This document shows positions 1 through 59,287 of a stretch of 64,000 nt of DNA, piece by piece. The stretch comes from Octopus sinensis (lineage: Eukaryota). Positions within the stretch are counted from its first letter, which is position 1; every line of letters starts with the position of its first letter. Position numbers and translations under genes: made by a program. The notes below the pieces were generated by a model. The model saw nothing but the letters and a program-made list of their open reading frames with translations, did not search any database and was not told the origin of the DNA. The DNA lies in contig NC_043011.1 of the NCBI RefSeq assembly GCF_006345805.1, positions 31,694,464 to 31,758,463 of the forward strand, read 5' to 3'.

Positions 1-2858
1 CACTGTGTTTCTAAATTCCACTGATTCTATTCACAAATTAGGTCATCTTAATGTTTTATAGACACCCTCAATAACACTCCAGCCTTGAATTCTGTTGTGA
101 CACTTTTAAGTAGTTGGATTACAATTAACATGCCCAGAATTGGACCCACATAGATTTTGAATTCCTCTGTATAAAAATAATAACCTGAATATGCCTTTTT
201 TTTATATATATATTTCCCACACCTGAATTTATAACTTCCTTTCATAAGTCATTCATCCATATCTAATTCCTGCTTTCTTCACCACACCTCACTATACAAT
301 ACAGCTCTTGTCAAATGCTTTACTTTGTTAGACTCTGCATTAATGCTTATAGACATCTAATCCCTAATACTGAAATGACAGTATTAGATTAAAATTGATA
401 TTCTTTCACACTAATCACATGGAGTGGTAAGGGGGTCCATTTCCAATCATAGTTTTCATCTCATTGTTTATATTTCTTGATTATTTATAACAGTTGATCC
501 AATGCCTTGTATCGCTGTGTACATTACGCTGATTCAATCAAGTTTATTTCCTCTTCAAGTTGGCTTTGAACATAGCAGCAGAAACATCCTGTTAAATCTT
601 GGTCGTCCGTTGGTCACCCAAGGAATATATATATCTGATTGAAAGTGAACTTTCAATTGCTATGTTTAAAATACATCAATTTTAATCAATGTCATTTGGT
701 AGGGTTCGGATTAAACTCCTAAAATATTATTAAAATGTTCTACTGAAGTATAACTGCTGAGTAAAAATTGACAGCTGCGGCAGTAGCATTGTTGCTATAC
801 CCCAGGCCGATGGTGGGGGTAGGATGCTTAAGTCCTTCAGAAAGAAGTACAAATCATTATATTGGATTATATTTTTGTTGATTTAAATTTATTGAAAGCT
901 TAACTTTACAGTTAAATACGAATTTTTAGAAAGACCTATTTAAATTTCTCTGATCTACATTGTAACTACAATTGTGTTTTAAAATATAAATCCAAAGAAA
1001 GTTTAAAAAAGTTATAGTATTTGTTTTAACTCATTAAATCTTGCTATGATCAACTTAACCTTTCAACCCTCCAGGGTCAATAAAATAACATACCAGTCTA
1101 GTTTTGAGGTCGATGGTATCCACTAACCCCTCAGAATTGCTAACTTTGTGTCTAAGAAAGTCCCTCTCAAAATTGCTTACTTCTTGTCTAAATTAGAAAC
1201 CGTTTTGATGCCATCTTATCAGATGGCAGTAAACTAAGGCAAAATGCGTTGAGTGTTGCGTCATGTGCTACACACGAACAAGAAGGAACATCTTGTGAAA
1301 CTGAATTGAAATGTTATTGTTTATAGTACGGCAATTGATTCCTTCTAACACAATTGTAAATCAACCTTATTTTCACGCTTTTCTCCAATTCCAAAAATAT
1401 CGATCGAAATATGGTGTATAAACTATAAAACTAAACTACCCCTTCTCTTTATTCAAATTACTATCAACTGTAACTAATGCTAAATGCCGAGTTTTTAACA
1501 GCATGTTTCAAGAAAAGATAATCTGTGCCTTCGTAGATCATTAGTTATCTCCCTTGCGTTACATCGCGTATTGTTTTTTTCAATATTTTGCGTATTTGCG
1601 ATCAAGGTATATACTAACTTGAATTGATGTATAAATTGTTTTAAGATATTTTTTAAAGTTTATATCTATATTATTCATTTTGAGTTACATTGCATCAAAT
1701 GATGTTGATGGTGCTAATAAAATAAGAATATTAGGTGTTGGAATAATGATTAGATATGTGACTTTTAAAATGTATGATATAAAATATAAAGCAATGAATA
1801 TTTAAAGTTTGTAAGAGCTACTAAGATAATTCATTACTACCATTTATGAAATAATACAAATACTGCAATCTTAGGCACATCTCAGTTCTCCACTGTGCTT
1901 ATGTGAATGCATATTTAAGTAATGTCTATAGCAAAGAGGAGAGCAAAGATTTGGAATGACAGATTCATGAAAATGTTACTTTATTGTTTAACATTATATA
2001 ATTCAGTTTATTCTGATAGATGTTTTCGCTCCCTGTTGACCAACTGGGTTGTTTAACTACAAGATTACTATAAAACTAAAGGGGTGAATATATACTTTTC
2101 ATTTTCAATGATTTGATTTTCCAAACAAACATGCATTTTATGGCAGATTTATGCTACTGTTTTTAGCTTCGGATTTTCACCAGTTTAGATGTCCTAGATT
2201 TTATCAACTACTTCATGTCCTCTTCTATCCAATCATGCTCCATCTTCGCAATATACCAACATATCCCCACACCCTTTTCTCAGCCCATCTAAGCCTCTGT
2301 TTTAAATATCCAGGTGACCACATTCACTCTTAGCTCTGACACTTCTGCCCGTGATTTTGAGAGCCACATTTCTCATGTTTTGCAGGAAGACTCTAATATC
2401 TATAAAAATAGCAGTTTTATTTTTAGATAAATCTCTGCAGCATTTCTTATTGAACGGTTATTTTCCCCCTAAACTCTTATTTTATTTTGTGTGCATTTGG
2501 ATAGAAATTTAACAAGAAATATATATTGGGAGGGATATATAAAATAACATACACAAGGCTTTTGAATTTATGCTTTTCCAAATATTCTTGCACAGGATTT
2601 TTTTTCTCTTTCTTTGTTCAAATGTCTCCAGTAAGTTAAAAGTTGTTAGATGTTTAAAATGGTTTTAACCTTGAAGGAAAAGAGATCTTCAAATGCCACA
2701 AAGGAAGAAAATTTATGAATTAAAAGTTATTGTTAAACTGAAGTTATCATCTTTCAAATCCTGTCAAGCCATACTGTACTGAATTAAAAATTTTGTGTCA
2801 AGTAGCTAATTCCTTTCTTGTATTTTCTCTCACATTTTAAAGTAATTGGTGTGAAAAT

Positions 2859-2860
<2 letters not shown>

Positions 2861-2926
<66 letters not shown>
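2861..2926. repeat. (AT)n microsatellite, representative of many in the window
   Basis: Pure (AT)n. Other tracts: (TA)n near 7330, 16825, 22921, 24440, 43213 and 43705; (CA)n near 10285 and 32486; (TG)n near 15935, 47229 and 51857. Confidence 0.99.
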
Positions 2927-2928
<2 letters not shown>

Positions 2929-5199
2929 ATCATCCTTGCACTTGTTTAGTCCACTACTGGATGAATGCCTCTTCCTGGACATGGTGTTCTTTCAGTTATA
3001 TAATTTGGTATTCTATCTATTGTCCTTTCTTCTAAATGCATGTCCAGTGAAAAGCCATTTCAGATTTTCATTTTCCAGATAATATCTGTTAAACCTGTTG
3101 TATATAAATGGCAAATCCTTTGAACATAGACAGTTGCATCCCAGCAATTTCTATGTTGATGTTTTTATGTGTATTCATTTTGAAGAAATATTCTGCATTA
3201 AGGAAAAAACATTTTTTCAATTGTTGTTTGTGAGTTAGAATTGTTAAGAACTCATTTGTAATTTTTATGATTAAAGGAAAATACTTTTTAGATGAAAAAT
3301 CTTTAAACATGCAAGAATAAAACTTTACAGATCACATCAAAGTTATATATTAAACTTGGGCTTTAAATATTGTAGTACTGGTATAGAATGAAGTATTTTA
3401 TTGTGGAAAAGCAACTTTATATATATTTTTTCTCTTATTACAAAAGAACTGGTGAGAAATGTATGTATTTATATATATATATATATTCATATAAAAACAA
3501 TAAAATAAAAGTTACTTTGTTGAGGATATGTTTGAAAATTGGTCTTTGGAAGGCACAAGGAGACCCAAAGAATGATGCATTTCAAATGAATAAACTGTAA
3601 CTTAAGTAAACTAGTTCAGGATTATCCATTAATTACAAAACTTAGACTGGTCATGTGTCCCTACACGTGAATTGCTTGGGTGAAGTTTTTAAGAGTGAGG
3701 GGAATTTTTAAAATTTTGATTTGAAGTATTGCTAGTAAAGGAATTTTATTTTCAAATATAGTCTAATTGCTATCACAAAATATTAGATTATTATTTCTAA
3801 TTAGCCTTTACTAATCTGTTAATTTGTTTATATAGGATGTAGCCATAGACTAAATAATAAAATAAATTGCTGTCTTTAGTTATGCCCAACAGAATGGTAA
3901 ACATTAAATATATTCTTAACTTTGTAGGATATCACACACTATAATGAATTTGAAAACTTTGCAACCAAAACATTAAATTATTTGGATGTTTATTAGTGTG
4001 GTTACTATAGAAAGAATTCAAAACATTAATATCTTTTGCTATAGTCTGAAACTGTGCCATGGGTAATTAAATTTTGAAAATAGCTTTTAGTAGTAAACAA
4101 TGCCTATTATCTTATTGTTTTTAATGTGGCATAACATAGCAATGGAGGAGGGGTGGTCTCCAGGTCCTAAACTGTATCAGACTTAACTAGCTGGAACAGT
4201 AGCATAGTATGAAACTTGGTTTTATAAATACTATAAGACTTCATTCACTCAGCAGGAGATCTGTCTACACTGCTGGAATTTTTCTTTTTTCCCAGATAAA
4301 ATAATAACATGAAATATTAATACTTTTGATAGAAGATAAATAACTTAGCTGCAAATATATTCCACTTTTTAAAAATATATTTACTACTAAATAAAAGTTT
4401 CCATTTAAAAACAAAAATTTACTTCAGATTTTGTTGTGTTAATTTTATGGAATTTAATTTCTTTCTTTAAATTCATATTAAAAATTAAAGCATTTAAAAA
4501 CATTTGATTTTCTTCTATACTTTTTTTTTTCTTTTTAATATCTGTTCCCTTCTCTTGATTGCTGCTATTCTCTTTTAGAATATCTATCTCTGCTAGCCTT
4601 AGTTACATCTCTGAATAGATTTCTCACTTCAGCTTTTCCATATGGTCTCAATCATAGACCAAACTCTCTGTTAGCACTTAACTTTACACCTAGCTCATAT
4701 TTCACTCAGGGAAATCCCAATTTCATTTAGGGGTGTTCAGCTTCAGTTGCTTTCTGCCACATATGTTCATAAGTTCTCTAATCCATTTTTACTTACTCTA
4801 AAGGACTATCTTAAAATATTTCAACTTTGTTGTATTCATTCATGTATGTGGTTGTTTGAATTCACATCCTTATGAATAGGATAACTTATTCTCTTATATT
4901 CCTATACTGTTTTATAATTAGGTTTATAATTTCAACTTTAAATAGGTTTACTGAGACTTATTTACATAATTAGGAAAGACTTTTTATGTTTTTATTTTCA
5001 TTCTACTGTGAGTGTCTTGACTGAAGTTTGCTTCTGGTGTGTTGCTAAACATCTGTGTCAAGTTGGTTGTTACCTACTGTGGTTGAAATTGGACCAAACC
5101 TTCAGAATCTGCTGATGATACTTAGATTTTGGAATTCTCATATTCATGGGAATATATCGTTGTCTTTAAAACTGTGTGTGATGACTATTAACTTTTACT

Positions 5200-5463
5200 A
5201 GATGTTATCTCTTCTCTCCTTCTCCCCACTAACTCTCACTTATTTTTCTCGCTCTCCCTCTTACCATCACTAACTCATTCTTATGCTCTAACACTCTGCC
5301 TCTTTTTCTCTCTCTCCTTCCTCTGCCCCCCCCCACTCTCCCTTTCTCTTTCTTTCACTCTCTCTCACCTATATCTCCTTTGCTGGCAATTTAACTGTAG
5401 CAGCAGTGCTTGATTTAAGGACAGAGAGGGTTGCAGCTGTCTGACATTGCACATTTGGTGCCA
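5200..5463 (+). promoter_or_regulatory. Putative internal (Alt) promoter / 5' UTR: CT-rich tract followed by E-boxes
   Basis: Long CT-rich tract at ~5200-5380, TATA-like TATAT near 5370, CAGCTG at 5434-5439 and CATTTG at 5452-5457. Promoter function is inferred only from position upstream of the candidate Alt ATG. Confidence 0.35.
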
Positions 5464-5493
5464 ATGTACTACTACTCCAGACCCAAGTTACAG
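5464..5493 (+). CDS. TCF12/TCF4 (da): Candidate alternative first coding exon (Alt-type N-terminus) MYYYSRPKLQ
   Basis: ATG TAC TAC TAC TCC AGA CCC AAG TTA CAG|gtgtgc. The phase-0 donor matches the phase-0 acceptor of the VYSPS exon. An in-frame TAA at 5416-5418 has no ATG between it and 5464. The peptide resembles the vertebrate Alt ending MYYYNGK(A/T)|VYAPS. Confidence 0.65.
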
Positions 5494-7301
5494 GTGTGCT
5501 TCATTTCATGCTTACTGTCTAAATGTTTTCTATATGTTTGTTTATTTATTGTTTACTGGGTCTCACAACTATAGCATGACTGACTACTATCATTTTTTTT
5601 TTTTGTTCTGCTCTCTTTCCCAGAATAGAACCAAGGAAATTTGTCTCAACAATAAAAAAAAAATAAGGGGCATATTTGTTTTCCTTCTAGTTTTTAAAAC
5701 TAACAATTAAATAGAAATAGTTAAATACTATCTAGTATTTAATTATTTTATGTGGTTCAACAGCTTCTACTAAAGTTTTGAAATCTTATACCACTTTATT
5801 TCCAATTCTGATGTTTTAACAGGATTATAACACATGGGCATAATCACAGTGTACTTTAGTAAAATTTGTCCCTTAATTAGCTTCCTCTACTTTTTGATAA
5901 AGTATAATTCTGTTCAACTGTTTTAATATTTGAAAGATGACCAAATGTTTGAACCTATTCCTTCTTAAGAAATTAAAAATCTTAGGAGAAAAAAGTTTGT
6001 TTTATTTACATTGACTTTATTATTTCATGATTTTATTTTACTTTTCTTTTTTACCAGACTATGGTTAAGACTTTAATGAGGTTTCTAATTACTGTATATA
6101 ATAAATACAAATATATATTTATAATATGGATGGATCTTATATTCTGCTGGTAGTCTAAAAGAGTAAATATTTTGGCATAGGTTTATATATTTTATAGAAT
6201 TCTCACTTTTAGAGTTAACTTTTTATATCTCTTTCCTGCTGATTTGTTGAAGCCATATTATCAACTAATCTAATCTTTTTATTAGTTCATTAGATATGTC
6301 TCAACTCACTAGATAAAATCTCCTGGATCCATTTTATTGAAAAATACTGTGTTATTTTTTATGATTTTAGAAATTTATATTTGTTTAGAATGAAAAAAAA
6401 TTATCCCCACAAACCCTAGCAATAAATAGATTATTCTCTTTCTAGTCAATGTGTTTTATCAATTATATTCTGACCAGTTGGGCCTGCCATGCTAATAGGA
6501 ACATGTTTGGGAGTGGAGCATGTCTTAGATCCCTCTACCCTTTTCTCTGGCTTCTCTCTCCTACTTCCCCATATAAACTTCCTGTCTGCATGCTAAAGAT
6601 TTCAAATACCCTGAGTTTCATCAATAAATATTTTGATTTGAGCTTTCTAAACTTAATACATTAACCAGATAATTGAATCGTCTTTATTTGTTTATTAGCT
6701 TGGTCATGTTTAGAAGTTAATTAGCTATTATTTATTGAGGAAATTACTTTATATTTTAATTATTAAAATGATACTTGCATGTGTATACATGTATGTGTGT
6801 GTCTATTTACACACGTGCCTGTGTAAATGTGTGTGTGTGTAAAATACATATACTTTCCACAGAGCATATTTTAATTCAGCTAGACAAAGTATTTTTCACT
6901 GAGTATGCTCCATAACTAATTAAGAATTAATTCCAGTCATGACAAAAGTCTGTATGAAAGCAATAAGGAATGGGAGACCATAGAACATGGCAATACATTG
7001 TGCCTGTGTGTGCATGCACACATGTGTGAGTGTGTATGTGAATGATCTTATAAGGGGGAAAAAAATGAAAGAAAAGAAAAAAACACATTTCTATTCCAAT
7101 GATGATTTTCTTATGAGTGATAACATTTCTTTAAAAAAGGATAGAAAACTTTGGAAGTAAATGAGTGTAATCAAATAAGATGAAATGTAAACAAACTGAG
7201 TTCTTGATTGTGTGAGAGCCAATGATTAAATGAATATCTACATTTTGTGTCAGCTAATGTGTGTGTGTGTGTGTGTATAAATATATATATATATATGTAT
7301 G

Positions 7302-7355
<54 letters not shown>

Positions 7356-7452
7356 AATACTTCAAATATACCGTAAATGGTCCTTTTACATACCGAATAC
7401 TGCTTGGTCGAATTGATTAACAATTAATTAATTCTACCCTTTTTTACTGACA

Positions 7453-7484
<32 letters not shown>

Positions 7485-7490
7485 TATATA

Positions 7491-7721
7491 TAGGGTTAGC
7501 CAAAAGTCACCAGACAGTAAATCAAAATTACATAGATACTATCTATAATTCTGTATTGACTCAAATGGAAAATGTGTTGCTCAAGAAGGACTTTAGTTTG
7601 AACACTTTATCATGATGTTTCATATTTAGATGTTTAGTAAATTCATTCAGTTGTTAAACATAAATAAATCTTGGAATTAAATGGTTTTGATTTACCATTA
7701 GGTGACTTCTGGCCAACCCTG
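7491..7721. mobile_element. Tc1/mariner-type MITE, 231 bp
   Basis: TIRs tagggttagccaaaagtcacc / ggtgacttctggccaaccctg, set in (TA)/(TG) microsatellite. Confidence 0.75.
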
Positions 7722-10280
7722 TGTGTGTGTCTGTGTGTATATAAATATATAGTATTTCTAAATTGAATTTTTCCCTGTAAGTTAGGAATAATATTCCCTC
7801 AAATAATAATAATTATATATATATATATCATACATAATTAATAATAACTTTTTCTACCTTCCATATATGATGTTGTTTAGTTCTTATTTGGATCTCAAAG
7901 AGTAAACCGGTGATCAAAGATATTCAAGCCAGGCTCATCTTGTCATTTCTTTTTGAGAATAGTGTACCCCACCATCTTCAGTTGTGTGTGATTTGAGGGA
8001 GATTAGGTAGCTATTTTTAGCAGACTATGTAATCTCATAGATTCCTTTGTTCAGTTTGGAAAAGGTGTTGCCATCTTCACTATTAAACAACAAAAACATT
8101 TGCCTTTTTGTTTTTTATATATTCATTATGTGACAGCATATTCTTCAAAGCCACCTAAATAACTGACACATGCACACACAGTGAAATAAACAGTTTTATA
8201 TTTTGGATAATTCTTTCTATTTAATTAATTCTGACAGCATTAGCTGTTTGCTATTATTAATGAATGTGTTGCTCAAGAAGGACTTTAGTTTGAACAGTTT
8301 ATTAGTGGAAATATAAAAAAAAAAAGAAGCAATATGTATATTTTCCCCCAATTTTGCTTTTGATTCTTGATGAAATTTAGCTCATGATCCTAAACCATTG
8401 AGAGAAATGCTGCTACTTTTTGTAAAAATACTTTTGACCCAATTTTTCCTTTTCCTTTCTTTTTTGCTTTGACCAAGTCTATACACCCCATGCTCCATCT
8501 CTTGTCTCTCCCTTTAACACACAATTCACCTATTATAATTTAATATTGGTAGAGTATTGATGGCCACACCCTCTCCTTCTGTATATAAAATAAAATAAAA
8601 CCGTAGTTGTTTTGTCTGTCAAAAAAGAATTAATAACTTTTCCTAAATTGTTCCCCTATGTATTCATATTTGAAGATATAGAATTAAAATAATTTTATAC
8701 TTAAATGCCAGGCTTTACTGACATTAAAAATAAAGTTTGTGTATGCTTAGGCTTTAATCCTGTCCCACCCCCACTTCATACCCACAACACTATATTAATA
8801 TTTCATAAAATGACTTTTCCTTCCATTTTTTAAAAAAAATGTATAAAAGTAAGGATTTGTTATAATTCTAGCTTTTTTCTTGTATTTTTAAATGTTTTTT
8901 GCTCAGGTCTAATTAATTTAGTACTAATTCAAAGGGAGGGAAAAAAACAATTTCTTGTATCAAGTTACTATTATTATTATTTTTATTTAAAAATCCTTAT
9001 TTAAAATCTTTCATTTAGCAAGTGTTAGCTTTGTCTTGTTTTTTATCCTCTTCTTTTTTTTCTTTCTTAACACTATTTATGTTGTGTTTGTGTGAGCATG
9101 TGTGAACACACACACACTTGGGATGAACTACAAATATAATAAACCTATTGCAAAACTTAATGTTTTTAAACTATTAATAACTGTTCTTGAAATAGAGAGA
9201 GAGAAAAAGAGAGATGTACCCTAACTTATTACTGATGTAGATTTTTTTTTTTTTTTGTCAAATTATCCCTTCTCTCTAGAATCAACACAGTATGCAATAA
9301 TCTAGTTTGTAAGTTGACACAAATCACATTCTTAACCTAGTTTAAATCCTACTACTGCAAGTCTGTGAATAGACTGGCTTGTGCTGGTGATACCATGTAT
9401 GCTGCTGCTGCTGAATTTTAAGAAACCAACTTCTACTACCAGACAAAGATGTTATTTCAGCTTATGCTGCCTGAACCTCTACTCTTAGTTTAGCTTGTTT
9501 CCCACATTGGCCTAATAATCTTGGCGTCTCATACTAGGAGGAATACCTGTCCATTCATGAAGGCTTTTTTACTATTCTTTCAAACAGCTAAGTAGATAAT
9601 TGATACCAAGGTTTACTACGCTCATTATCATCTCTCATCTCCCATCATTATCATCACCGACAGCAATGATTAGTTTATGAAAGTTACTTCATGATAATGT
9701 GAATTAATTGGAAAAGTTCTTTCTCTCCTAACTAATGGATTATAGCTGTGAGTGGTCACTTGTAGCTGGGTTCTCAATGTCTCTGAACATATATTGGTCT
9801 AATTTGTTCACTTTGGATCTAATGACCAGCTGAATAGTTTGATTGATTCACTTTCGCTCATCTTTTGAAACTAGTTACAATGTATTGTACAACATATCCA
9901 TTCTATAGAACCCTTATGTACCTCCCTCCCAAAGGAAATGTAAGTATAGTATATTTTTTTTTTTTTTACTGAAAAAATGTTTTTCTGGTTAGATTTATTT
10001 AGTTTTCACTTATATAATATTTTATTTTGAACTTAATGAAATTAAGGAACAGGGGCTAACTTGGGAATTAGCTTGTTTACAATTTAGGTAGTTATATAAT
10101 GTTATTTTCTGAGGTAGTATGGTTAGTTAATTATAGTAATTTCATGATATAATTTAAGTTATACAATGTTGTCTTGAGACAGTAAGTAATTTATATATCT
10201 ATTGTTTATTTGGTAAATATAATTGACTACTTTCATCTACTTCATAACTAAATATCTATTTCTCTCTCTTTCACTGTATG

Positions 10281-10323
<43 letters not shown>

Positions 10324-11033
10324 TCAGACAAACCAATTTAATAATACTTGCCCTTCTTTAGTGTGTATATATGTGTTTTTGCAAATTTCTCTCTTCTGTC
10401 TTTATTGAACCTGACTTGGACCTCTCTACTTGTGGCCATCTCCATTGGATGCTATATGGATTTATTTGGAGTTAAGCACCAAAGGACTGACTGTTTTTCT
10501 TTAACTATCTCTTATATTGGATATTCATTTACATCATCTTGGAACTTTAGTGAACTGCCCTAATGTCCAGTTTGATTTGATGTATAATTTACCTTCAATA
10601 TTTCCAAATTGGACCTACTCTTAAGTTTACATATTGGATATCTACATTGGATTTTACTCGGAGTTATTGAAACTAATTTCTTGCTTTTTATATTAAACAA
10701 CTTGCAAGTGAATATTTTTACCACATAGGATTATTTTCTTCTCATATTTTTGCATCGGCCTTCAGCATTACACATGGAGCTCAGTTATTTAAATTTATAA
10801 ACCAGAATTTTATTCGTTTTTGCAGTTTCTTTAGTTTTTTTTTTTTTTTTTAATAGCCTGTGTTCAAATTCTGTCTGAATTGACTTTGCTTTTCCTCTTT
10901 CTGTGTTTGGTGAAATAAGCACCAGTTGATCTTAATCGATTATACTCTCCATGAAAAATACACTTGTGCCTTGGTTAGAAATTGTTGTTATGATAAAAGT
11001 TAGATATTGCTGCTGTTATTATTATTATAATTT

Positions 11034-11840
11034 AGGTGGCGAGCTGGCAGAATCATTAGCACGCTGGACAAAATGCTTAGCGGGATTTCACCTGTCACTA
11101 TGTTTTGAGTTCAGATTCCACCGAGGTTGACTTTGCCTTTCATCCTTTCAGGGTCAATAAATTAAGCACTAATGAAACACTGGGGGGGGGGTGTAATCGA
11201 CTAGTCCTCTCCCCACAAATTTCAGGCCTTGTGCCTATAGTAGAAAGGATTATTATTACAATAAGGCGGCAAGCTGGCAGAATCATTAGTATGCTGGGGA
11301 AAATGCTTAGCGGTATTTTGTGTCTTTGAATCCTGAGTTAAAATTATGCTGGGGTTGACTTTGCCTTTCATCCTCTTGAGCTCAATAAAAGAAGTACCAG
11401 TTGAGTACTGGGATCGATGTACCTCCCCCCAAAATACTGACTTTGTGCCAAAATTTGAAACCATTATTATTATTAAGGCAATGAGCTGGCAGAATTGTTA
11501 GCATGTCATGTGAAATGCTTAGCAGTATTTCATCCATCTTTATGTTCTGAGTTCAAATTCCGCTGGGGTCAACTTTGCTTTTCATCCTTTCAGGGTCAAA
11601 TAAGTACCAGTTGAGTACTAGGGTCAATGTAATCGACTAATCCCTTCCCACCAAATTTCAGGCCTTATGCCTATAGTAGAAAGGATTATTATTATTATTA
11701 TTGTTGTTGTTGTTGTTGTTGTTGTTATTGTTATTATTAAAAAAGGCTGTGAATGACAGAATCAGTAGATCTCTGAACAAATTCTGAATTTAAATCCCAT
11801 TAGGGCTTCATATTGCCTTTCATCCTTACAAGGTCAATGA
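11034..11840 (+). mobile_element. Head-to-tail array of four tRNA-type SINE copies (family A) separated by (ATT)n/(GTT)n tails
   Basis: Repeated gagctggcagaatc.ttagc ... ttctgagttcaaattcc ... gactttgcctttcatcc ... gtaccag, starting near 11034, 11262, 11475 and 11742. Further family A copies lie near 1055, 13040, 26110, 41905, 42380 and 50885 (minus). Confidence 0.85.
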
Positions 11841-14565
11841 AGCAATTTGTATTTAATTAATTACACCATTCTCTAAATTTGTGGCGTTGTGGCTCTGTTA
11901 GAATTTACTACTACTACTACTGGTGGTGGTGGTATATATATATATATATTTTTTCCCTTTCTCTCCCTACTCCTAATAATATATTTAAATCCACAACATA
12001 GTTTCATTCTATGAGAACAAATGGTTGCTAGGAACCCAAGCAAGAGAGAAAAATGAAATAAATTTATAAACAATGATAAATGATATTTATTTAAGTTACT
12101 TTCTTTTTATCCTTAAATAATTTTATCTCAATTTTTATCAAGTTAGATCTTTGTGAGTAGTTTAAAAAAAAAAAGTTTAATGCTCATTTAAAGAAACTGC
12201 TTAATTTAATTTCAGTACAGTGCAAAAAAAAAAACAAAAAAAACAATGCAAAAAAAAAAAGGACAGCTCATATTTGTTCCTTATGTTTTTTCTTTTACTT
12301 CAAATTTATTAATATCTTACCAAGTTTGTTTCAATAACTTTCTTGAAACAAAATTTTTACCTTGAGTTGCTTTTAAAAGCAGATGTCTTTATTTTCATGA
12401 AAACAAAAAGTAACTTTTAAAGTAACTTTGGTCAATTTTACAAATATGACTCAGTGCAAATTTATTGGCATTATCATTTTAAAATCAGGGACCAGTTTTA
12501 AGTGATTTCTTTGTTTGTTTTTGTTCTAGTGTCTTTTTGTATAATCTTATTTTTGTTTTGTTTATATAATTCACAAGATATCAATGTGTATTTTATTCCT
12601 ACTTCATTGTGTATGTATTGCGTTAGTGGTAATTGCTGTGCTCTTGTTTTATAGCTCCAATTCAATTGTTATATGCCAGGTCAGTTCAGCCAAATGACTT
12701 TCCAGCTATGACTATCCAGTTTTATTTTTGATGGAAGATCAAAGTGTATCATCTTATGTCTTCTATTTTGTTTTCTTTAGGGTGTGATTTGAAGGAAATG
12801 TAACTGCTGTTTCTAGTAGGTTTGAATGACCACATGGAGGATCTTGTTGGCTTATTGTTTTGTCACAGTTGTTCATAATGGTAGTGGTGGTGATGGTGGG
12901 CTCATAATGTAGCAATAGTTTCTGGTGGCTTTGTTTCAATTCCTTGTTGGAGTAGCTTCATTTACTATGTTAATGTTATTGTGAAAGGCATGAGCATTCT
13001 CTACCTCCTCCTCTTCCTCCTCATCATCATCACAGTATTTGGTAATGGTTGAGGTTATAGGATGTAAGGCTAAAATGCTTTGTAGTGTTTAGTTTTCCCC
13101 TTTTCTCTCACAAGTTTCAAATCCCATTAGGGTAAACTTTGTCTTTCATTATCCCTTGAGATCAATAAGGCAATATACTGTTGTATCTAGTCAAGAGAAA
13201 TCTATGAGTATTATTATTACTATTATTCTTGGATGTACTGCTTCTTTTCTCTTAAAAGTTACTTATAACTCTTGGAAGAAAAACTGTAATCAGTTTCCAA
13301 GTTTTCCTTTTAAAATTTCATTTCCAAATTCTACTAGTGTTGTTCGTTTTTTACAAAAAAATTTTTTGTCTTCTGATAAGACAGCAGTGGTGGTATTATA
13401 GGTGTAATGTGGTCATGGTTATGATGATGATGCTTCAGGCCTCTGGGTTCCCAGGATGTTGCATGCTTTCATAGCAGACATAATATTGCTTTCTTAGGCA
13501 AGATGCTTAAAGCTATGTCCCCAACATCTTATTAAGGGAGTGATGGTTCAATGATTCTGTAATGGTGTTGTCTAGAAATTTCTTGAAGCTGATTAATTTG
13601 TTAAGCTCCTATACCTTCTACAACCCACCTTCTATAGTAATAATCAGATTGTTGTATTTAATAAAAACATTTAACCCTTTGGCATTTAAACTGGCCATAT
13701 CCGGCCAGGATATTCTACCTGTTTAATGCTCAAACTGGTCATATCTGGCCTCTCACACTAGGGTGTGTGTGTGTTACTCAGGATGTTGTATATGTATAGA
13801 GACCCAACAGTTTATAAACATCTAAAAAATTACTGTTGAGTCTGTATACATATATCACATGGTTGGTTATATGCAAGCATTCTCAGAAAGGATATTCTCT
13901 CCAGATTTCACGTATAATTAGTAGAAATATACTTGCAAGGCTATATTTACATCAATTGTACAAATATGTGTGTGTGTTTGTGTTTATAATGTTTTTAGTC
14001 TTTTTCCAGTTCTGTATATTTTTATCAATGTATGTGAATGTGATTGTGTGTGTATTACTTTTTTGTTTTTCTATCTAGAATCTGTAGTTCAGTGGGAGCA
14101 CTACTGCACTTTGTAAACTGGGACTGTAGCTTCAAACCCAAATATTTGAACTTTCATCTGATATGAAACTAAATGATTTAGTAAATCATGCAGATTAAAG
14201 ATTTACTAGCATAGTCATACTGTAGCAATGCAGCTTTGGTTTCGTTCCATAGTTAAGATTCTTTCCTTTTTGACATAAACATAAAAATAATTAGTAACAA
14301 GGTAGAAAAAAACAATAAGTGTATAACAAAGAATATAGTTTCCAAAGATGTTCTCTCCTGAGATTGCAACGAATTTTGCACCATTTCAAGAGCCAAACAC
14401 AAATGCATTTTTAAAAAAAAATGAAAAAGAAAATAATGTATTTTGTGGATCTCTATAAACTGTTGACATTGTTTTAGTTTTCAATATTACATGAAATTTC
14501 CACAGACACTACTGGTAATCATGAAATTACAATTCTCAAAAAAAAATTTTCTTTTTCTTTTGAAG

Positions 14566-14653
14566 GTTTACTCACCTAGCCCAGATGAGTACCGTCAAGA
14601 TTCACCGCAGTATCCGTCTCCAAAACCAAGTATCTATGAGTCCTATATGTACG
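14566..14653 (+). CDS. TCF12/TCF4 (da): E-protein exon VYSPSPDEYRQDSPQYPSPKPSIYESYMY(D), 88 nt, phase 0 to 1
   Basis: ctttttcttttgaag|GTTTAC...TACG|gtgagt; aligns by eye to TCF4 [23 protein letters not shown]. Confidence 0.93.
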
Positions 14654-18451: not shown

Positions 18452-18597
18452 ATAATCCACATAGTTCTAGCGACCCATGGTCTCAAAATAATGGCCTTCC
18501 TACATCCTCATACACTTCATCAGTTCTACACAATAGTAGTTCCCATCATTATAGTCAGCCATCAACTTACAGTGGCATGCATCATACCCATGACATG
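18452..18597 (+). CDS. TCF12/TCF4 (da): E-protein exon (D)NPHSSSDPWSQNNG...HHTHDM, 146 nt, phase 1 to 0
   Basis: tttctttctcttgacag|ATAAT...GACATG|gtaagt; conserved SSDPW motif. Confidence 0.93.
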
Positions 18598-22978: not shown

Positions 22979-24440
22979 ATTTGAAAGAAAAGCTGTTCCT
23001 TATTTATGCACATACACATAACCATGCATGCATGTAAATCCCTGCACAGTTTCTGCCTTCCAGACTTGCTTTACAAGTCATTGGTGAACCCAAGGCTCAA
23101 GTAGAACACTTGCCCTTGATGTCATGCAATGGAACTGAACCCAATTTGTCAATAAACACACACACATGTGTGTGTATTTGTAGGCATGGTCTAGTGCTTA
23201 AAAAGTTCATTTTTATAATCATTTGGTGGGTAGAAACTGTGGAAGTTTGTTAAATGGACATTTAGTTTAAAAGGCCAGCCTTGTCACATACTCTATCTTG
23301 CTGATTCTGCCTGAGAATTAGGTTATGGTTTTAAAAGGAAAATACTCAGACATTATCTCCATAATTCAGTTGAACAACTGAAATACTTGAAACCATTCGA
23401 GGATCCATTTATTGTAGTATGTATGCATGTACTATTACAATACACTTTTTGTGACTAACACTAATTAGAAATCCATGATCAGCTCAATCTATTACTGTGA
23501 ATTGATTTGTCGTTATAGACAGGTATGTGCACAGACAAGTACATATACATATACACACAATATACATGTTCACATAAGCCTAAGTATACATTTATGTTCC
23601 TTCAGCTCGTACATGAACATATACTATACTTGCATGTGCTTACAGTCACATACATACAAATTTAACCACACAACCAGATGTAGACGTAGAATACACATAT
23701 ACACACACTGTCATGTAAGCATGAAAGTAAGCTTATTCACACATGCAGGTTGAGTAATGAATCCAAGTGCAAGCAGTAACCATTTCGGAAACTGCGTTTG
23801 TACTAAAGCAAACATACTTATACACACACATATGTATTGACATATTCTCTTTTTACGGTTGGTTTGTTCATTCATTTTACTCAATGACATGAGCCAATAT
23901 ACATGGCCCTTCAATAATGCTACAAATAGCAGCTATGTTGTTCTCAAATTACATTCTACTGTCTAGAAAAGGGGAGATTGGACTCATAATTCTCAGTGGG
24001 GTGTGCTCTGTGTCTGGGAAAGGAGTGGGATGGTCATAACTGGAATGCATTTCATAGTGAATATGTTTGATCAGGTATGATCAGGAAGTACACAACAACT
24101 GAAACAGCCACAGACCAGTGAGGTATCTCCATGGTTGCTTGAAATGTTACAAATGGCAGCCAAATCTCTTCTGGTCAGTGCTGCAATGCCTTTTATCATA
24201 CATATGCTCATTCAGAGCCTGGGACTAAACAGCAATAAAGTCTCTATGTAGTTGATCCACCTGCAAGAAATAGCAACTAAAGCTTAATAAAAAAGAGAGA
24301 TTCACTAGAGAATGTGAATTCTGATATTTTGAAATAGATGGGTTGGCTGGATAACTTTCATCAATGGTCTTCTCAGTCAGAGCTGACTTAGGTATATGTG
24401 CATGTATATATCAGTAAGTATTATATATATATACATACTT

Positions 24441-29960: not shown

Positions 29961-30185
29961 GGTTACCATACTGTTTCCCCAAATCATGAAGCTATGCTAT
30001 CATCAGGTCTTCCTCCTATGTCAACATTTCGCAGTAGTGGCAACACGCTACCTACTGTGCCTCCTGTGTCATCATCCACATTTTCCAACACTTCACCTAC
30101 AGTGAATGGCTCTGATATTATGCAGGCCTCTCGTAATCAAGGAACTACACAAACAGGAGACACATTAGGAAAAGCATTAGCCTCT
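29961..30185 (+). CDS. TCF12/TCF4 (da): E-protein exon GYHTVSPN...LPPMSTF...[11 protein letters not shown], 225 nt, phase 0 to 0
   Basis: tattttttag|GGTTAC...GCCTCT|gtaagt; LPPMSTF and TGD(T/A)LGKALAS motifs as in TCF4/TCF12. Confidence 0.96.
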
Positions 30186-34813: not shown

Positions 34814-34892
34814 ATCTACTCCACAGAACATACTAACAGCAGTTATGGCTCGAACCCTTCCACTCCAGTATCATCACCTCCTCCTATGTCAG
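34814..34892 (+). CDS. TCF12/TCF4 (da): E-protein exon [26 protein letters not shown](G), 79 nt, phase 0 to 1
   Basis: ttctgttttctag|ATCTAC...TCAG|gtaaaa; matches TCF4 [23 protein letters not shown]. Absent from the ORF track in this frame. Confidence 0.95.
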
Positions 34893-35879
34893 GTAAAAAT
34901 TCAAGTTATCAGGAGAAAGCATTTATGGGAAATATTGAGTACATTAGATCTAAAGGTTCTATAATATATATATGTCCTACAAATGGTATATATATGTGTG
35001 TGTGTGTGTGCGTGTGTTCACCATTTTTAGGACATTAATATGTAGTGTACACATATACATATTAATTGAATAAGTATATTAATAATTATTATATCATTTG
35101 TTAATGACTTTGGAGAAGTTATATGTAATGGGAAAGAATAAGTAAGCAAAGATATCTTTTTAAAACTTGCCGTATGAATATTCTTTCATCCAACATAGAT
35201 GAAACTGGAAGTACTGTTTATCCTATAAAAATGAATTGATACAGTTATATATCATCGTCATCTTTTAATATCTATATTTCCATGTTTGCATGGGTTAGAT
35301 GGAATTCAATGAAGTAGATTATCTAAAGTCAGATGCCTTTCCTGTTGCCAACTCTCAACTGTTGTCAAGACAAGGGCATACACATGATGGGCTTTTTTTT
35401 TTTTTTTTTTTTTTTTTGATTTTCCATCTATCAAATCCTCTCAAATAGCTTTGGTCAGGCTGGGGCTATAGTAGAAGCCAACTGCTCAATGTACTGAGCA
35501 GTGGGACAGAACCTGACATCGCCTGGTGGAAAGCAAGCTTCTTGACCATACATCCATGCCTACACCTATACAGTACAGTTTAAAATATCTTACTAGATAA
35601 AGCATTTTGAAACGACAGGACTTTAAATGCTCTTTGCACTTCACTCTGTCATTGAAGGTTGTCACCATCTTGTTTTCATCATCATCTGGCAAACTTTTGT
35701 AAAGACAAAATCCCTAACAGGTTTGCCTTTAAAATGTTGTGTTGGTATCATGAGATTACTTTCTCCGGTGGAGAGAGAAAATTATATAGAAATCGCCTTC
35801 CAACTGTTTTGATGATGACTAGCAGAAGTAATTTCTATAGTACTTGTAGGAGACGCTTCAAGTATTTTAATAACACTCC

Positions 35880-36668: not shown

Positions 36669-36748
36669 GCCCAACTAGTCACTGGCAGCGACCAAGCACT
36701 CAGAGCAGCACTACCTCGCCACATTTTGACAACCATCTTCATTCATTA
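36669..36748 (+). CDS. TCF12/TCF4 (da): E-protein exon (G)PTSHWQRPSTQSSTTSPHFDNHLHSL, 80 nt, phase 1 to 0
   Basis: atatttcag|GCCCA...TCATTA|gtaagt; W...SP....LHSL pattern of TCF4. Confidence 0.93.
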
Positions 36749-40723: not shown

Positions 40724-42902
40724 GTATTCCTGTCTCTCTGAACTTATCAAACTCTCAGCTAACAATTAACTCATCAACCTTCAAGATTTACTCATATTCT
40801 CGGCCCTCTCAGTAAATAATGTGTGTTTGTGTGTGTGAATGTGTGTGACTGTGTGTACACATACCCATAAAATGGTGTTGGAGCATTTATGAACTGTCCT
40901 AATTACTCATGATTTCACTTTATAGAAGAAGTGTCTGCTATTTGCAAACTCCCATCATCTCATTTTCTTGGTTGTTCGTCTTAGTGTTGCTGGTGATGGT
41001 AGTGGCAGTAGCAGTTTTGTAACTTAACTGTTTTGCTGCCATTGTTTCTTTAAAAGCATAAAACCCTAGGCCGTGCAGGCTTCGTTATTGTTGCTACTGC
41101 CGTCATCGTAACTGGTTTTCCATGCCAGCTTCATGTAGACAACAATTTGAAGTATTTCATCTTAAGACTTCCACCCGTTAGTTTACTTTTACCTTCACTT
41201 TCCTCACAATCACATGTATTTTCTTCATTTCTATACATATCTAGTTCGTTCAGCAGTATTTACATAGTAAAACTTTTGAGTTTCAGGATATTGACCTCGA
41301 CATTTAACCACTTACCTACCCGAAGCATTTTCATAAGTTTCTATTCAAACTTTCACTTAGCCCTTTTTCATGCGATCTAAGTAATATAAAGCTTTCCTTT
41401 CATAAGTCACACATTACCCTGGTGGTTGAAAAAAAAAAATGGTAATATGTATCTTATATATGATTCATGGATGTCAGAGAAATATGTTGTGTGTATCACA
41501 TCTGATAAACAAGACAGGCAAAGGGTTAAACAAAGGCTCACATTCAGGATTCTATTTAACTTTCAGTGACATTACAGTTGTGAGGCAGATGAATATTTGG
41601 ATGGTAAAATTTATTTGAACCTAACTGCCATTAAACTACAATACACACTGTTGGCATATTAAAGCTTTTAGACTATGTTAAGATGTGTATTGAGTGAAAA
41701 TAGTTTTTAAAAAATCAGTTATTTCAAATTACAGTCGCATGCATGGCTGTTTGAGAAGAAGAATAGACCTCAGTATTTTTTTCTTTTTAAATTCTTTTAA
41801 GCCTGTCAAACTGTTAAGTTTCGAGCATATAAAGGCATCAACATTGGTTATCAAGTGGTGGAAGTGGATGGGGGACAAACACCGGCACAAAGACTCACTC
41901 ATATAGATGCTGGTAGAAACGTTAGCGCGCCAGGCGAAATGCTTAGCGGTTTTTCATCTGCTGCTGCGTTCTGAGTTCAAATTCCGCCAAGGTCGACTTT
42001 GCCTTTCATCCTTTCGGGGTCGATTAAATAAGTACCAGTTTCGCACTGGGGTCGATATAATCGACTTAATCCGTTTGTCTGTCCTTGTTTGTCCCCTCTG
42101 TGTTTAGCCCCTTGTGGGTAGTAAAGAAATAGATATATACATATGAACGGTGGGCTTTTTTCAGTTTCCATCTACCAGATTCACTCACAGGCTTTGGTTG
42201 GCCCAAGACTATAGTAGAAGACACTTGTGGCTCTGAACCTGGAACCTGAAAGCAAACTTCTTATCACGTAGCCACTCCTGTGCCTATATTATCATTAGAT
42301 AGTTACAGTGATTTTTACCATATTTTGTTGACATTTCTTCTCCTTGGTGCTATCACAGATGTCATGAAATAAAGAGGTAGGTGCTGAGTGGCTGAGTTGT
42401 TATGGCGTCAGACAAAATACATTGCGTTATTTATTCTGGCAACTTGCGTTCTGAGTTCAAATTCTGCTGAGGTCAACTTTACTTTTCATCCTTCCCAATC
42501 AACAAATACACCAATCTAGGACGAGTAGACTGATAGAAACCTTTAGTGTGTCAAATGGTATAATAATAATAATAATTGTGGTATTCATGCCCTTTATTTT
42601 TCTCAGTTGCATATTCTTCATGGCTTACATGGGTGGCAGACAATTTGCCACCTTGAGTGCCTACCTTTAGCAGAATCCACTCTGTTGCAAGCATTTGGGA
42701 AGTCTTCAGTTTCAAAATGCCTTCTTCTCTGTCTCTCACTCTTGGAGTCTCTGTAGAGAATCAAGGGCACTGACCAGAGTTTAGGGTTTGGACTGATGCT
42801 AATTTATAGAGAGATAACATTACAGCTTTGAGGAAATGACACAAACACACACACACAGCTGGTTTATGCAACCATTCTTCTATTGAAGATGGTACTCATT
42901 AA

Positions 42903-44706: not shown

Positions 44707-44946
44707 CTAACTAGGATGGAAGAACGTTTAGATGATGCCATATTGGTTCTACGCAACCATGCCGAAGGTCAACCAACTCCCGGTATGATTCCAGGTTTGA
44801 CAGGAGGTCCAAGCAACATAATGCAACCACCGCCACATTCCAATGGGACATCAGCTGGAATACCAGGTGGGCCAAATGCCAATATACCTTCTTACCATGG
44901 CCTCTCGATGGCGGTGGCAGCTGCTGCACACATGGAATCCCATATG
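44707..44946 (+). CDS. TCF12/TCF4 (da): E-protein exon LTRMEERLDDAILVLRNHAEG...HMESHM (AD2 helix), 240 nt, phase 0 to 0
   Basis: ctttttctccaaacag|CTAACT...CATATG|gtgaga; the RLDDAI.VLRNH motif is the E-protein AD2 core. Confidence 0.96.
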
Positions 44947-50631: not shown

Positions 50632-50788
50632 CATCATCTGGTAATCAGTCCTCAGAGGGGCCAACGATTAAAGTTGAAAAATCTGACAAAATGCAGTCCG
50701 ACACAGAAGCTTCAAAAAGTGATAGCATTACATTGGAAAAAAATAGCTCACCTGGGAACTCAAGTGCACCCCCTTCAAAACGAGCTAG
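50632..50788 (+). CDS. TCF12/TCF4 (da): E-protein exon (A)SSGNQSSEGPTIKVEKSDK...PPSKRA(R), 157 nt, phase 1 to 2
   Basis: tttttctctag|CATCA...GCTAG|gtaagt; IKVEK resembles a psi-K-x-E SUMO consensus and PPSKRAR is NLS-like (both inference). Confidence 0.9.
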
Positions 50789-51892: not shown

Positions 51893-53826
51893 TTGTATGT
51901 GGCATTTATCACTTGCCATGCACAAAACTCTTTGTGGCCTTTGTGATACTTCTGTATCTTCCTGCTGATTAAATATTATGAAAAAAAAACACACACACAT
52001 ATAGAAAAAATGCACCCAGTACACCTCTGTAAAGTGGTTGGCATTAGGAAAGGCAACCAGCTGTATTTCAGCACAGCCATCTGGCTTGTCGTTCCTGTCT
52101 GACTGTCCAACCCATGCTGCCATGGAAAAATTGTTTGGATCAATTTGTAATTTTCTGTTAAAAATTCACATATAGTTATCAAATAATTTATAATAATGTT
52201 TCAATTGTGTTATAGAAAAGCCATGCCAGCATGGAAAACGGACATCACTGATGATGTTAATGAATTTATTATTAATTTAATGAAAGGAATTGCAGCAATT
52301 GAAATATTAGTTTTGCTGCAAAGTGAAATATGTCCAAGCTGAAGGAGACATTTGGTGGTTGTTGTCATAAAATGCAAAAAGAACTCAATGATGTAATTGT
52401 TTGCCCAAAATAGTCAAATCTCTCCTAGTGTTATGTAAAAGTCATTCAAGAGGACTTCTACAAGGTAGCAGGTTCCTCATCTCTGAAATGTCTCAAAGAT
52501 ATAAGGGCAAAAAAAAAAGTTTGGTTTCTGAAAAACATCCAACTTCAAAAGAAATTCTTGTTTTAACAAATGAAACAAATGTATAAACTTGGTTTGCTCT
52601 TTTAAATGTACATCTCTTTGTAAATATAAATATGTCTGGTCACAGAGAAATATTACCTTGCTTGGAAACAGGTGAGGGTTGATGACAAGAAGCGGATCTG
52701 ACAGTAGAAAATCTGCTTCAATAATAACCTTTGGACCCATGCAAGTATAGAAAAAAGTGAATGTTAAAATGATGAATGAATATAAATATTCTTTTTTCCT
52801 TTCCTTCTTTAAACTTTTCAAGTTTATTAATGTATTTATTCACATGCTGATGAAGAACAATCCATTGCTGTGAATAACTGGTTTGATATTCTGTAGGGTT
52901 TCACTTACAAATAGATAGATCTTTAAACCTTTTAGTTACCTAATTTATTTATTCAAAATGTGTTTCAACTGATTTTAAAGATATTTAAGAATTTGCAAGG
53001 ATTTAATAATCTAACTTTTGCATCATTAAGCTAGAGTTTGGAAAGATTCTTACATAGAATTACAGTTGAACATTTAAATTGAAGTATAACACTTAGAAAC
53101 TGTCTTATAGTATAAAATGCAGAGTCTCATGCTGGATGCTATCAAAATTAGGGTGCTGGGATTTACAAGTTGTGAAAATTCCAATCCAGTTGTGGGATTA
53201 ATTGAAAATATAAGTTACATTGCAGTATTTAGATTTGTCCCTCTTGATTCCAATTTCAAATCTTGCTGGTTCAATGCTAAATGTCCCAGTAATACTATGC
53301 TAATGTTAGTTTAAACTATTGTGTGGCTTCCTGTTGGAGCTTAATTTTGACCTAATCAAAGTAGGTTTTGTTTTCCCTTTAACTGATAATTACTGGAGAA
53401 AGTGTTATATTTCAAATATAGAAAATGAAGGGATATTTTAAGATGATATGTTAATGTAGTGTCACTGGGATAAACTGATTTATGGGGAATGTGAAACCTA
53501 TAAGCCCATATTTGTAAAAATACAGAAGTTTATTAAAATTTTGGATGAATTTTTTTCTTTTTTCAGTTTTGTGTGTCTTTTAATTGTTCTTGTTAAGGAT
53601 TTAAAATATTTCTTCCTTACATTAACTTTCTAGAATTAATTTTGGCTATAACAAATATTTTGTTTGAAAGTGGTGGATTTCTTTGTTTGAATATTGTAAG
53701 CGATTAAACAGTAAAGTGACATTTGCAGTTATCTTTATAGAAAGAAAATGTTGCAATTAGTGTTTTATACAATCATCTATATTTATGCAGTCATCTATAT
53801 TTTTAAACTTTTGTTATCTTCAATAG

Positions 53827-53910
53827 CAGTGATGGGGATGAAGATGACTCACCCGAAGCTAAAGCTGAACGAGAAAGATTGCGCAGACAAGCAAATAATG
53901 CACGTGAAAG
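53827..53910 (+). CDS. TCF12/TCF4 (da): E-protein acidic + basic-region exon (S)SDGDEDDSPEAKAERERLRRQANNARE(R), copy 1, 84 nt, phase 2-2
   Basis: ttatcttcaatag|CAGTGAT...GAAAG|gtattg; matches TCF4 [26 protein letters not shown]. Missed by the ORF track, which shows another frame. Confidence 0.96.
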
Positions 53911-54141
53911 GTATTGTAGTTATTCCTCTGTTGTGAAATAGGCAAAGTTTATTTAGACATAAAGTTGTAGTTACTGTTTCCTGAGTGTTGCTGTAATTTA
54001 CATGAAACACGTTAAAATTTCCATTCATTGAATTAAAGCTGTTCCATTATGTTTGTAAATTTAAGGAAAATGGAATCGTATTTGTTAACCTTATGAGCCA
54101 TGCAAGTTGTTCTCTGCCCTTTTACTTTAAACTTGAACAGA

Positions 54142-54250
54142 CATCTGTGCACATGCCCAACTGTTTTTTTGCAGACAGCTGTTTAACTCGCCCAACTGTT
54201 CTTCTTATAGACAGCTGTTTAACTTGCCCAACTGTTCTTACAGACAGCTG
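54142..54250. repeat. Minisatellite (about three 33-36 bp units) carrying 8 CANNTG E-boxes; second copy at 54986-55094
   Basis: CATCTG 54142, CACATG 54150, CAACTG 54158/54193/54229, CAGCTG 54176/54212/54245. Confidence 0.85.
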
Positions 54251-54670
54251 TTTTAGAAACTCACCTTGCAGAAACTTGTCGGAAATCAAAGTAAAAAAGA
54301 AATAAAAAAAAAAAACAAAAAGAATGTGTGAACATTCACCATTCTTAAATTTTCAGCTTTCTGTAAACAATGATTTTTCTTTTTTTTTCTTTCTTTTTTT
54401 TTTTTTTCAGTTTTGTGTGTCTTTTAATTGTTCTTGTTAAGGATTTAAAATATTTCTTCCTTACATTAACTTTCTAGAATTAATTTTGGCTATAACAAAT
54501 ATTTTGTTTGAAAGTGGTGGATTTCTTTGTTTGAATATTGTAAGCGATTAAACAGTAAAGTGACATTTGCAGTTATCTTTATAGAAAGAAAATGTTGCAA
54601 TTAGTGTTTTATACAATCATCTATATTTATGCAGTCATCTATATTTTTAAACTTTTGTTATCTTCAATAG

Positions 54671-54754
54671 CAGTGATGGGGATGAAGATGACTCACCCGA
54701 AGCTAAAGCTGAACGAGAAAGATTGCGCAGACAAGCAAATAATGCACGTGAAAG
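54671..54754 (+). CDS. TCF12/TCF4 (da): Second identical copy of the basic-region exon inside the tandem duplication
   Basis: Same sequence and splice sites as 53827-53910, offset by 844 bp. Its existence in vivo is unverified. Confidence 0.55.
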
Positions 54755-59141: not shown

Positions 59142-59287
59142 GGTTCGAGTACGAGACATTAATGAAGCATTTAAGGAGCTGGGACGTATGTGCTCCTTAC
59201 ATCTTTCAAATGACAAACAACAGACTAAATTACTGATCTTACAGCAGGCAGTCACCCTGATCACAAGCTTAGAGCAGCAAGTACGAG
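59142..59287 (+). CDS. TCF12/TCF4 (da): E-protein HLH exon (R)[48 protein letters not shown](E), 146 nt, phase 2 to 1
   Basis: ttttgttatacag|GGTTCG...CGAG|gtaggg; typical class I bHLH helix-loop-helix. Confidence 0.98.

Follow-up and report, generated by a model that had tools for sequence, protein, structure and literature searches.

Introduction

The closest described systems to the one reported here are the Alt forms of the vertebrate E-proteins, that is, HEBAlt from TCF12 and E2-2Alt/TCF4-A (ITF-2A) from TCF4, which begin at an Alt first exon driven by a promoter of its own and give a product without AD1 (PMC3346973, PMC9385190). In the mouse, a truncated construct (MET2) that starts at the methionine of the MYYY motif retains Alt activity (PMC9385190). 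Both vertebrate Alt exons are found in the same intron, the one before the exon that begins with VY(S/A)PS, join that exon in phase 0 and encode 23 residues, among them three consecutive tyrosines (YYY), a motif that is linked to JAK-dependent regulation in mouse HEBAlt. An Alt form outside the vertebrates is already published, namely for sea urchin, where Schrankel et al. (2016, Dev Biol 416:149) reportedly described SpE-Alt as an Alt form of the single invertebrate E-protein gene, and the publicly available gene models of annelids, a snail and a scallop already include homologous N-termini.

Here we analyse a stretch of DNA of 64,000 nucleotides (hereafter, the window), for which an original prediction, made from the letters alone, had proposed that the segment 5464-5493 of the plus strand represents a mollusc Alt exon reduced to a 10-residue YYY core. 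What we consider modestly new in our results is that protostome and vertebrate Alt domains can be linked at the level of single residues, that YYY falls outside the common core of the domain, and that a small conserved element with an E-box lies upstream of the Alt exon.

Results

The plus-strand gene is, by its sequence, an E-protein gene of the TCF4/TCF12/daughterless type, as had been predicted: exons could be mapped from 14566 to 59287, the spliced product carries a C-terminal E-type bHLH (Pfam HLH, 1.4e-10) and the AD2-type motif (RMEERLDDAILVLRNHAEG; conserved form LDDAIxVLRNHA), and its top database matches, among 6057 matches to E-proteins, are all TCF4/TCF12 orthologues. The closest proteins (45-52% identical) are those of annelids, gastropods and bivalves. 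The database searches brought up no cephalopod protein; the window holds most of a lophotrochozoan E-protein gene, which looks molluscan and may be of cephalopod origin. The exon map is based on tblastn and splice-site inspection, with human TCF12 and TCF4-A sequences serving exclusively to locate exons and all comparisons that carry weight being made on database sequences.

The first exon common to all isoforms spans 14566-14653, encodes VYSPSPDEYRQDSPQYPSPKPSIYESYMY(D), and has the phase-0 acceptor (ttttgaag/GTT TAC TCA CCT AGC) that the original prediction had named; its homologue in a closer relative (locus L006, below) is at 10127. It is followed on the same strand by coding exons at 18452-18597 ((D)NPHSSSDPWSQNNGL...HTHDM, also matched in L006), 29961-30185 (GYHTVSPNHE...TGDTLGKALAS), 34814-34892 (IYSTEHTNSSYGSNPSTPVSSPPPMS), 36669-36748 ((G)PTSHWQRPSTQSSTTSPHFDNHLHSL), 44707-44946 (with the AD2-type motif, RMEERLDDAILVLRNHAEG) and about 50649-50788 (SSEGPTIKVEK...PPSKRA, the 5' boundary being approximate), all located by tblastn, and then by the basic-region exon at 53827-53910 ((S)SDGDEDDSPEAKAERERLRRQANNARE, tblastn) and the HLH exon at 59142-59287 (beginning with (R); tblastn and Pfam). 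This list may be short by one exon between 44946 and 50649, and the last coding exon (ERNLNPKAACLKRREEEK) lies beyond the end of the window at 64000. No AD1 or other canonical N-terminal exon was detectable in 1-14565; hence, the window starts inside the intron preceding the VYSPS exon, and its first 14.5 kb were correctly recognized before as the intron that houses the Alt exon in vertebrates.

Searching the window with the Alt peptides of lophotrochozoan gene models returned one strong match, at 9880 (tblastn with the annelid Alt peptide, E=5.8e-9 over 9880-9933, MYCTTYPFYRTLMYLPPK), which tblastn, candidate ranking and comparative loci together define as a plus-strand Alt first coding exon at 9880-9939. 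This exon is 60 nt long, encodes the 20 residues MYCTTYPFYRTLMYLPPKGN (ATG TAT TGT ... GGA AAT/gtaagt, phase 0), has A at -3 of its ATG and an in-frame TGA at 9844 (12 codons upstream), and is situated 4.4 kb downstream of the flagged segment and 4.6 kb upstream of the VYSP exon, which it joins in phase 0. The intron allows 203 mini-exons that run from an ATG to a phase-0 GT. Of these, the 9880 exon is the best match to the Alt peptides of annelid, scallop, snail and chicken alike, with a score of 78 vs. 27 for the runner-up in the annelid case. The in-frame TGA and the lack of a frame-compatible acceptor mark it structurally as a first coding exon. It coincides with no Rfam family, long ORF or tandem repeat, and the window holds no further copy. 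The intron also contains TA and AC microsatellites (7276-7354, 7453-7492 and 10284-10322), and the AC repeat, which follows the Alt exon after 350 nt, produced spurious translated matches (THTHTH) to snail loci.

The same arrangement of an Alt exon upstream of a VYSP exon is present in four comparative loci. In Lamellibrachia (L001) and Bulinus (L003) the annotated coding sequence starts with the Alt exon (ending GCC/gtaagt and TAT/gtgagt, respectively, both in phase 0), which precedes the VYSP exon by 4.0 and 6.2 kb; in Solemya velum (L005) it is found at 42590-42649, in phase 0 and 11 kb from the VYSP exon, and in the closer relative (L006) at 3774-3833, 6.3 kb upstream of that exon, being unannotated in both. 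All five Alt exons, including that of the window, have a purine at -3 of the ATG. At the protein level, direct homologues of the 9880 exon, joined in phase 0 to VYSP or VYPP, form the N-termini of 'Transcription factor 12' of the tubeworms Lamellibrachia satsuma and Ridgeia piscesae (…MFCTTYPYYRHLVYMPGKLGA/VYSPNP), of the model of the snail Bulinus truncatus (MFTSSYTYPMYPPPFVYLAPGSQSKGNY/VYSPGP) and of isoforms X2/X3 of the scallop Mizuhopecten yessoensis (…YRPYPNMYPPLGLCRPTKV/VYPPQ). In contrast to these models, the exon is unannotated in Solemya velum, in L006 and presumably in the window's species. The Solemya model ('hypothetical protein ScPMuIL_003115, partial') is canonical only, lacking the Alt first exon (MYCAYPFYRPLGMYLPTKIS/GTAAGT) that is clearly present in its 32.5-kb intron upstream of the VYSPN exon. 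In Candidula, no Alt exon was found within 10 kb upstream of the VYSP exon; the Aplysia contig covers the 3' half of the gene only. A profile of invertebrate Alt plus VYSP peptides, run against a set of 5.8 billion proteins, returned three genomic ORF fragments and nothing else.

Between the window and Solemya, 14 of 19 aligned Alt residues are identical, seven of them through different codons (e.g., Arg AGA/CGC and Leu CTT/TTG), and the flanks of the exon show background identity. The L006 locus (ENA ERZ21867824, ctg116342l) is a 182-kb contig with an E-protein gene and a GC content of 31%, whose exons are 78-83% identical to those of the window at the DNA level and whose VYSP exon is 26/30 identical to the window's. 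Its Alt peptide, MYCTTYPFYRPLMYLPPKGN, matches that of the window at 19/20 residues, with eight synonymous differences and one non-synonymous, and DNA conservation (83%) extends from 14 nt before the Alt ATG to 8 nt past the donor, that is, over an island at 9866-9947 of the plus strand that corresponds to L006 3760-3841 and is bordered by intron that does not align. Such an excess of synonymous change, coupled to conservation confined to the exon, is what a translated exon under purifying selection is expected to leave, and these comparisons, which span a near relative, a bivalve, an annelid and a snail, show selection on the Alt peptide. The window, Solemya and Bulinus seemed to share a CTTTGG-like motif located 50-70 nt before the Alt ATG, but this candidate was dropped since L006 has a TA microsatellite there.

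In a multi-species alignment these Alt peptides are collinear, end to end, with the vertebrate MYCAY(P/T).PG.G..SLMYYYNGK(T/A). The 9880 exon shows the homology of the whole domain (M-[YF]-C-x-Y-P ... L-[MV]-Y ... K), sharing the M-Y-C-x-Y-P start, the L-M-Y...K end and approximately the size (20 vs. 23 residues) of the vertebrate exons, and differs from them in having FYRTL instead of VPGMGxNS in the middle and Y-L-P instead of the YYY phospho-motif. Opposite the vertebrate YYY, the window, L006 and Solemya have Y-L-P and the annelid has Y-M-P, which means that the JAK-responsive triple tyrosine is not a common feature of the Alt domain; it marks the vertebrate members rather than the wider family. 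Based on this homology and on the shared position and phase, we consider it very probable that 9880-9939 is the orthologue of the vertebrate HEBAlt/TCF4-A Alt exon, i.e., the dedicated Alt first exon of this E-protein gene, and that the flagged segment at 5464-5493 is separate from it. We infer that the exon has its own promoter, with a transcript start just upstream of 9880 and a splice from 9939 to 14566 that would give MYCTTYPFYRTLMYLPPKGN/VYSPSPDEY..., and any function of the exon has the same inferred standing. Like its vertebrate counterparts, the resulting isoform is predicted to lack the AD1-containing N-terminus (encoded by exons upstream of the window) and to retain the AD2-type motif and the bHLH.

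The flagged segment itself reads as had been described, with ATG TAC TAC TAC TCC AGA CCC AAG TTA CAG at 5464-5493 of the plus strand followed by GTGTGC in phase 0, and with an upstream in-frame stop, the nearest being the TAA at 5416-5418; the base at -3 of the ATG is C. The encoded mini-ORF, MYYYSRPKLQ, is in the correct intron and in phase 0 with the VYSPS exon, and its donor (CAG/GTGTGC) scores on par with the real donors of the gene. It is located outside repeats, tandem repeats, long ORFs and Rfam families and has no further copy in the window. Its likeness to the Alt domain is restricted to MYYY(S)R, the M-Y-C-x-Y-P half being absent; among the 203 candidates it ranks 32nd to 70th against invertebrate Alt peptides and does well only against vertebrate ones, via MYYY. 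The junction peptide MYYYSRPKLQ+VYSPS had no candidate in the 5.8-billion protein set, and an MYYY start directly before VY(S/A)PS was seen in 0 of 202 retrieved E-protein sequences. An early link between the flagged peptide and the annelid Alt peptide ('HLV…P.KL') was abandoned, the 9880 exon as the true homologue giving a better explanation of it. Directly upstream of the segment lies a CT-rich tract of about 180 nt (5200-5385), which gives low-complexity matches to the CT tracts of snail loci and is not kept in Solemya.

How often such a pattern arises by chance can be judged within the same window, where ATGTAYTAYTAY occurs in two copies vs. 0.22 expected. The second copy opens the ORF MYYYNTLF/gtgact (23427-23450, phase 0) and served as our chance control, having a weak donor and no homology; given its position in a later intron, between the exons at 18452-18597 and 29961-30185, where an Alt exon is impossible, MYYY patterns do occur by chance on the plus strand. 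In first-order Markov simulations, the probability of at least one MYYY in a 14.5-kb intron was 0.046, and that of MYYY plus an in-phase GT before a stop was 0.018. That is, the combination of MYYY and a donor is uncommon but not, by itself, compelling.

The flagged segment does, however, coincide with a conserved block (5450-5496 of the plus strand; hereafter, block 1) that consists of the core CACATTTGGTGCCAATGTACTACTACTCCAGACC (5450-5483) and CAGGTG (5491-5496) and matches Solemya L005 at 35777-35811 (28/35 identical) and 35827-35832 (CAGGTG). In the alignment, the window reads CACATTTGGTGCCAATGTACTACTACTCCAGACC, a gap of nine positions and then CAAGTTACAG/GTGTGC, and Solemya (35777-35832) reads CACATTTGGTATCAATGTTCTACATTCCCAGACCCCTCAAACCGCTCTCACAG/GTGCGT; the components of the block are CACATTTGGT, an ACATT-N7-AATGT inverted repeat that spans the ATG, and CAGGTG, which is a canonical E-box. 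In an unbiased comparison of the two introns, block 1 was the best non-repetitive match and the Alt exon was second, and for the pre-defined segment the Smith-Waterman score was 21 vs. a null mean of 13.1 and a maximum of 20 (100 simulations). Block 1 is upstream of the Alt exon in both species, by 4.4 kb in the window and by 6.8 kb in Solemya, and in both it has an ATG, an open frame and an in-phase CAGGTG, with 30 and 39 nt, respectively, from ATG to donor. The top rank and score, the common ATG, frame and CAGGTG, and the same order relative to the Alt exon argue that the flagged segment is not a chance ORF.

The part of block 1 that is kept is its nucleotides rather than its peptide. Conservation of the segment had been put forward as a check of the original prediction, and it is borne out for the nucleotides in the Solemya intron but not for YYY, with MYYYSRPKLQ standing against MFYIPRPLKPLSQ, which starts with MFYI. 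Aligned codons show four amino-acid changes and one synonymous change, five of the six degenerate codons that are conserved are identical, the best-kept part, without a single difference, is the 10 nt upstream of the ATG, and the -3 base is a pyrimidine in both species (C or T), as opposed to the purine of the five Alt exons. The change within YYY, the identity of codons at an evolutionary distance where synonymous sites are saturated, the upstream conservation and the -3 pyrimidine together argue for a constraint that is not on a peptide. This conservation concerns two species, the L006 sequence ending 3.8 kb upstream of its Alt exon, and in the annelid and snail loci the 10 kb before the Alt exon do not contain block 1. 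A scan of metagenomes with the 20-base core pattern gave one random match, with a stop after YY and without CAGGTG. An RNA structure was ruled out as an explanation, the block folding no better than shuffled sequences (z = +0.5 and +0.8).

Discussion

The proposal of an Alt-type first exon in this intron, in phase 0 with the VYSPS exon, is upheld by our results, while its placement at 5464-5493 is not, given the homologue at 9880-9939. The 10-residue version of HEBAlt/TCF4-A cut down to its YYY core does draw on the resemblance of MYYY(S)R to the vertebrate MYYYN(G/R)K, a well-scoring phase-0 donor in the correct intron, and the activity that the mouse MET2 construct keeps when starting from the MYYY methionine (PMC9385190). 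Nonetheless, the mollusc Alt domain is full-length, with 20 residues that are under peptide selection 4.4 kb further downstream in the same intron; lophotrochozoan Alt domains have Y-L-P or Y-M-P where the YYY core was thought to be retained; and the low rank of the flagged peptide against invertebrate Alt peptides, the MFYI of its bivalve counterpart and the 0/202 count all point the same way. We therefore regard the reading of 5464-5493 as the mollusc Alt domain as extremely improbable.

What block 1 represents is a more balanced question. We place roughly even weight on its being a putative cis-regulatory element of the E-protein locus that includes an E-box, a proposal that rests on the two-species alignment and in which taking CAGGTG as an E-box rather than a donor is our interpretation. 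Intronic E-box (CAGGTG) enhancers of bHLH genes offer a likeness, in that block 1 combines a conserved CAGGTG with an inverted repeat within an intron of a developmental transcription factor; in contrast to those enhancers, block 1 is known here from its letters, and the hexamer is equally readable as a CAG/GTG splice donor. Reading it as a donor leads to a second, independent and minor alternative first coding exon, M(Y/F)Y..RP...Q/VYSP, beside the Alt exon, comparable to the several first exons that vertebrate TCF4 has in this intron. The conserved ATG, a frame that both species keep open to a good CAG/GTG donor, its phase 0 relative to the VYSP acceptor, and ATG-to-donor lengths that differ by 9 nt, a multiple of three, would all fit such an exon, as would other short N-termini on the same exon in vertebrate and snail models (e.g., MELFYFCNAAA/VYAPS and MMSRDGERDFIELKPVS/VYSPV). 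The -3 pyrimidine, the four amino-acid changes vs. one synonymous change with identical codons where the Alt exon shows synonymous saturation, the peak of conservation upstream of the ATG and the lack of any database protein with such an N-terminus count against it, making a second first exon unlikely, though a contender. Less likely still in our estimation, and doubtful, would be a broader scenario in which molluscan genes have two internal first exons (Alt plus a micro-exon M(Y/F)Y..RP..Q located 4-7 kb upstream and common to this lineage and protobranch bivalves), with the micro-exon having converged on the vertebrate MYYY in this species and providing a third class of N-terminal isoform.

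Two further explanations carry less weight. The flagged segment might be a chance ORF whose likeness to Solemya is also due to chance, consistent with the second MYYY and in-phase GT at 23427 in an intron unsuited to an Alt exon, with the single random metagenomic match to the core pattern, and with the best scores of shuffled introns in an unrestricted intron-vs-intron DNA search (18-24), which bracket the observed 21. Yet the best real match fell on a segment of about 60 nt that had been named beforehand (its position alone amounts to roughly 0.5%); the match keeps the strand and is collinear with the Alt exon, and an in-phase CAGGTG follows within 7-16 nt in both species. We hold coincidence to be very improbable. 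It is also conceivable that block 1 belongs to an exon that is internal or non-coding (a 5'UTR exon or a cassette with a stop), using the AGs at 5399-5406 behind the CT-rich tract: the 180-nt polypyrimidine tract (5200-5385) is accompanied by a ttaac branch-like site and three AGs, and an exon at 5401-5493 would measure 93 nt and contain the in-frame TAA at 5416. Neither the tract nor the acceptors are conserved in Solemya, however, and splicing 5493 to the sole AG upstream of the Alt ATG (exon start at 9875) would, as read from the sequence, break the frame, so that we hold this possibility to be very improbable. Of these readings, the putative regulatory element is the one we favor, and as a small conserved E-box element upstream of the Alt exon it offers a candidate regulatory site that is directly testable.

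For the Alt exon at 9880-9939, the comparison shows that molluscs and annelids have an Alt first exon homologous to the vertebrate one at residue level, and this homology indicates that the design with two promoters (Can/Alt) is older than the protostome-deuterostome split. The ancient parts of the domain would then be M-Y-C-x-Y-P and L-M-Y…K, with YYY not among them. In terms of annotation, a 60-nt first exon has been overlooked in at least one published mollusc gene model, that of Solemya.

Finally, the 3' part of the gene has features of its own. The basic-region exon is found twice in the window, its exact second copy being at 54671-54754, within an 844-bp tandem duplication (53550-55244) that is 99.9% identical, with identical coding sequence, and whose origin is either a very recent duplication event or misassembly; a transcript with both copies would carry the basic region twice in frame. 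Two diverged tandem copies of this exon are also present in bivalve models (scallop X2, Mercenaria and Solemya). The window has a single HLH exon, of a vertebrate-like type, and annelid and oyster models (P0001 and P0003) have two alternative tandem HLH exons, an arrangement that recalls E12/E47.
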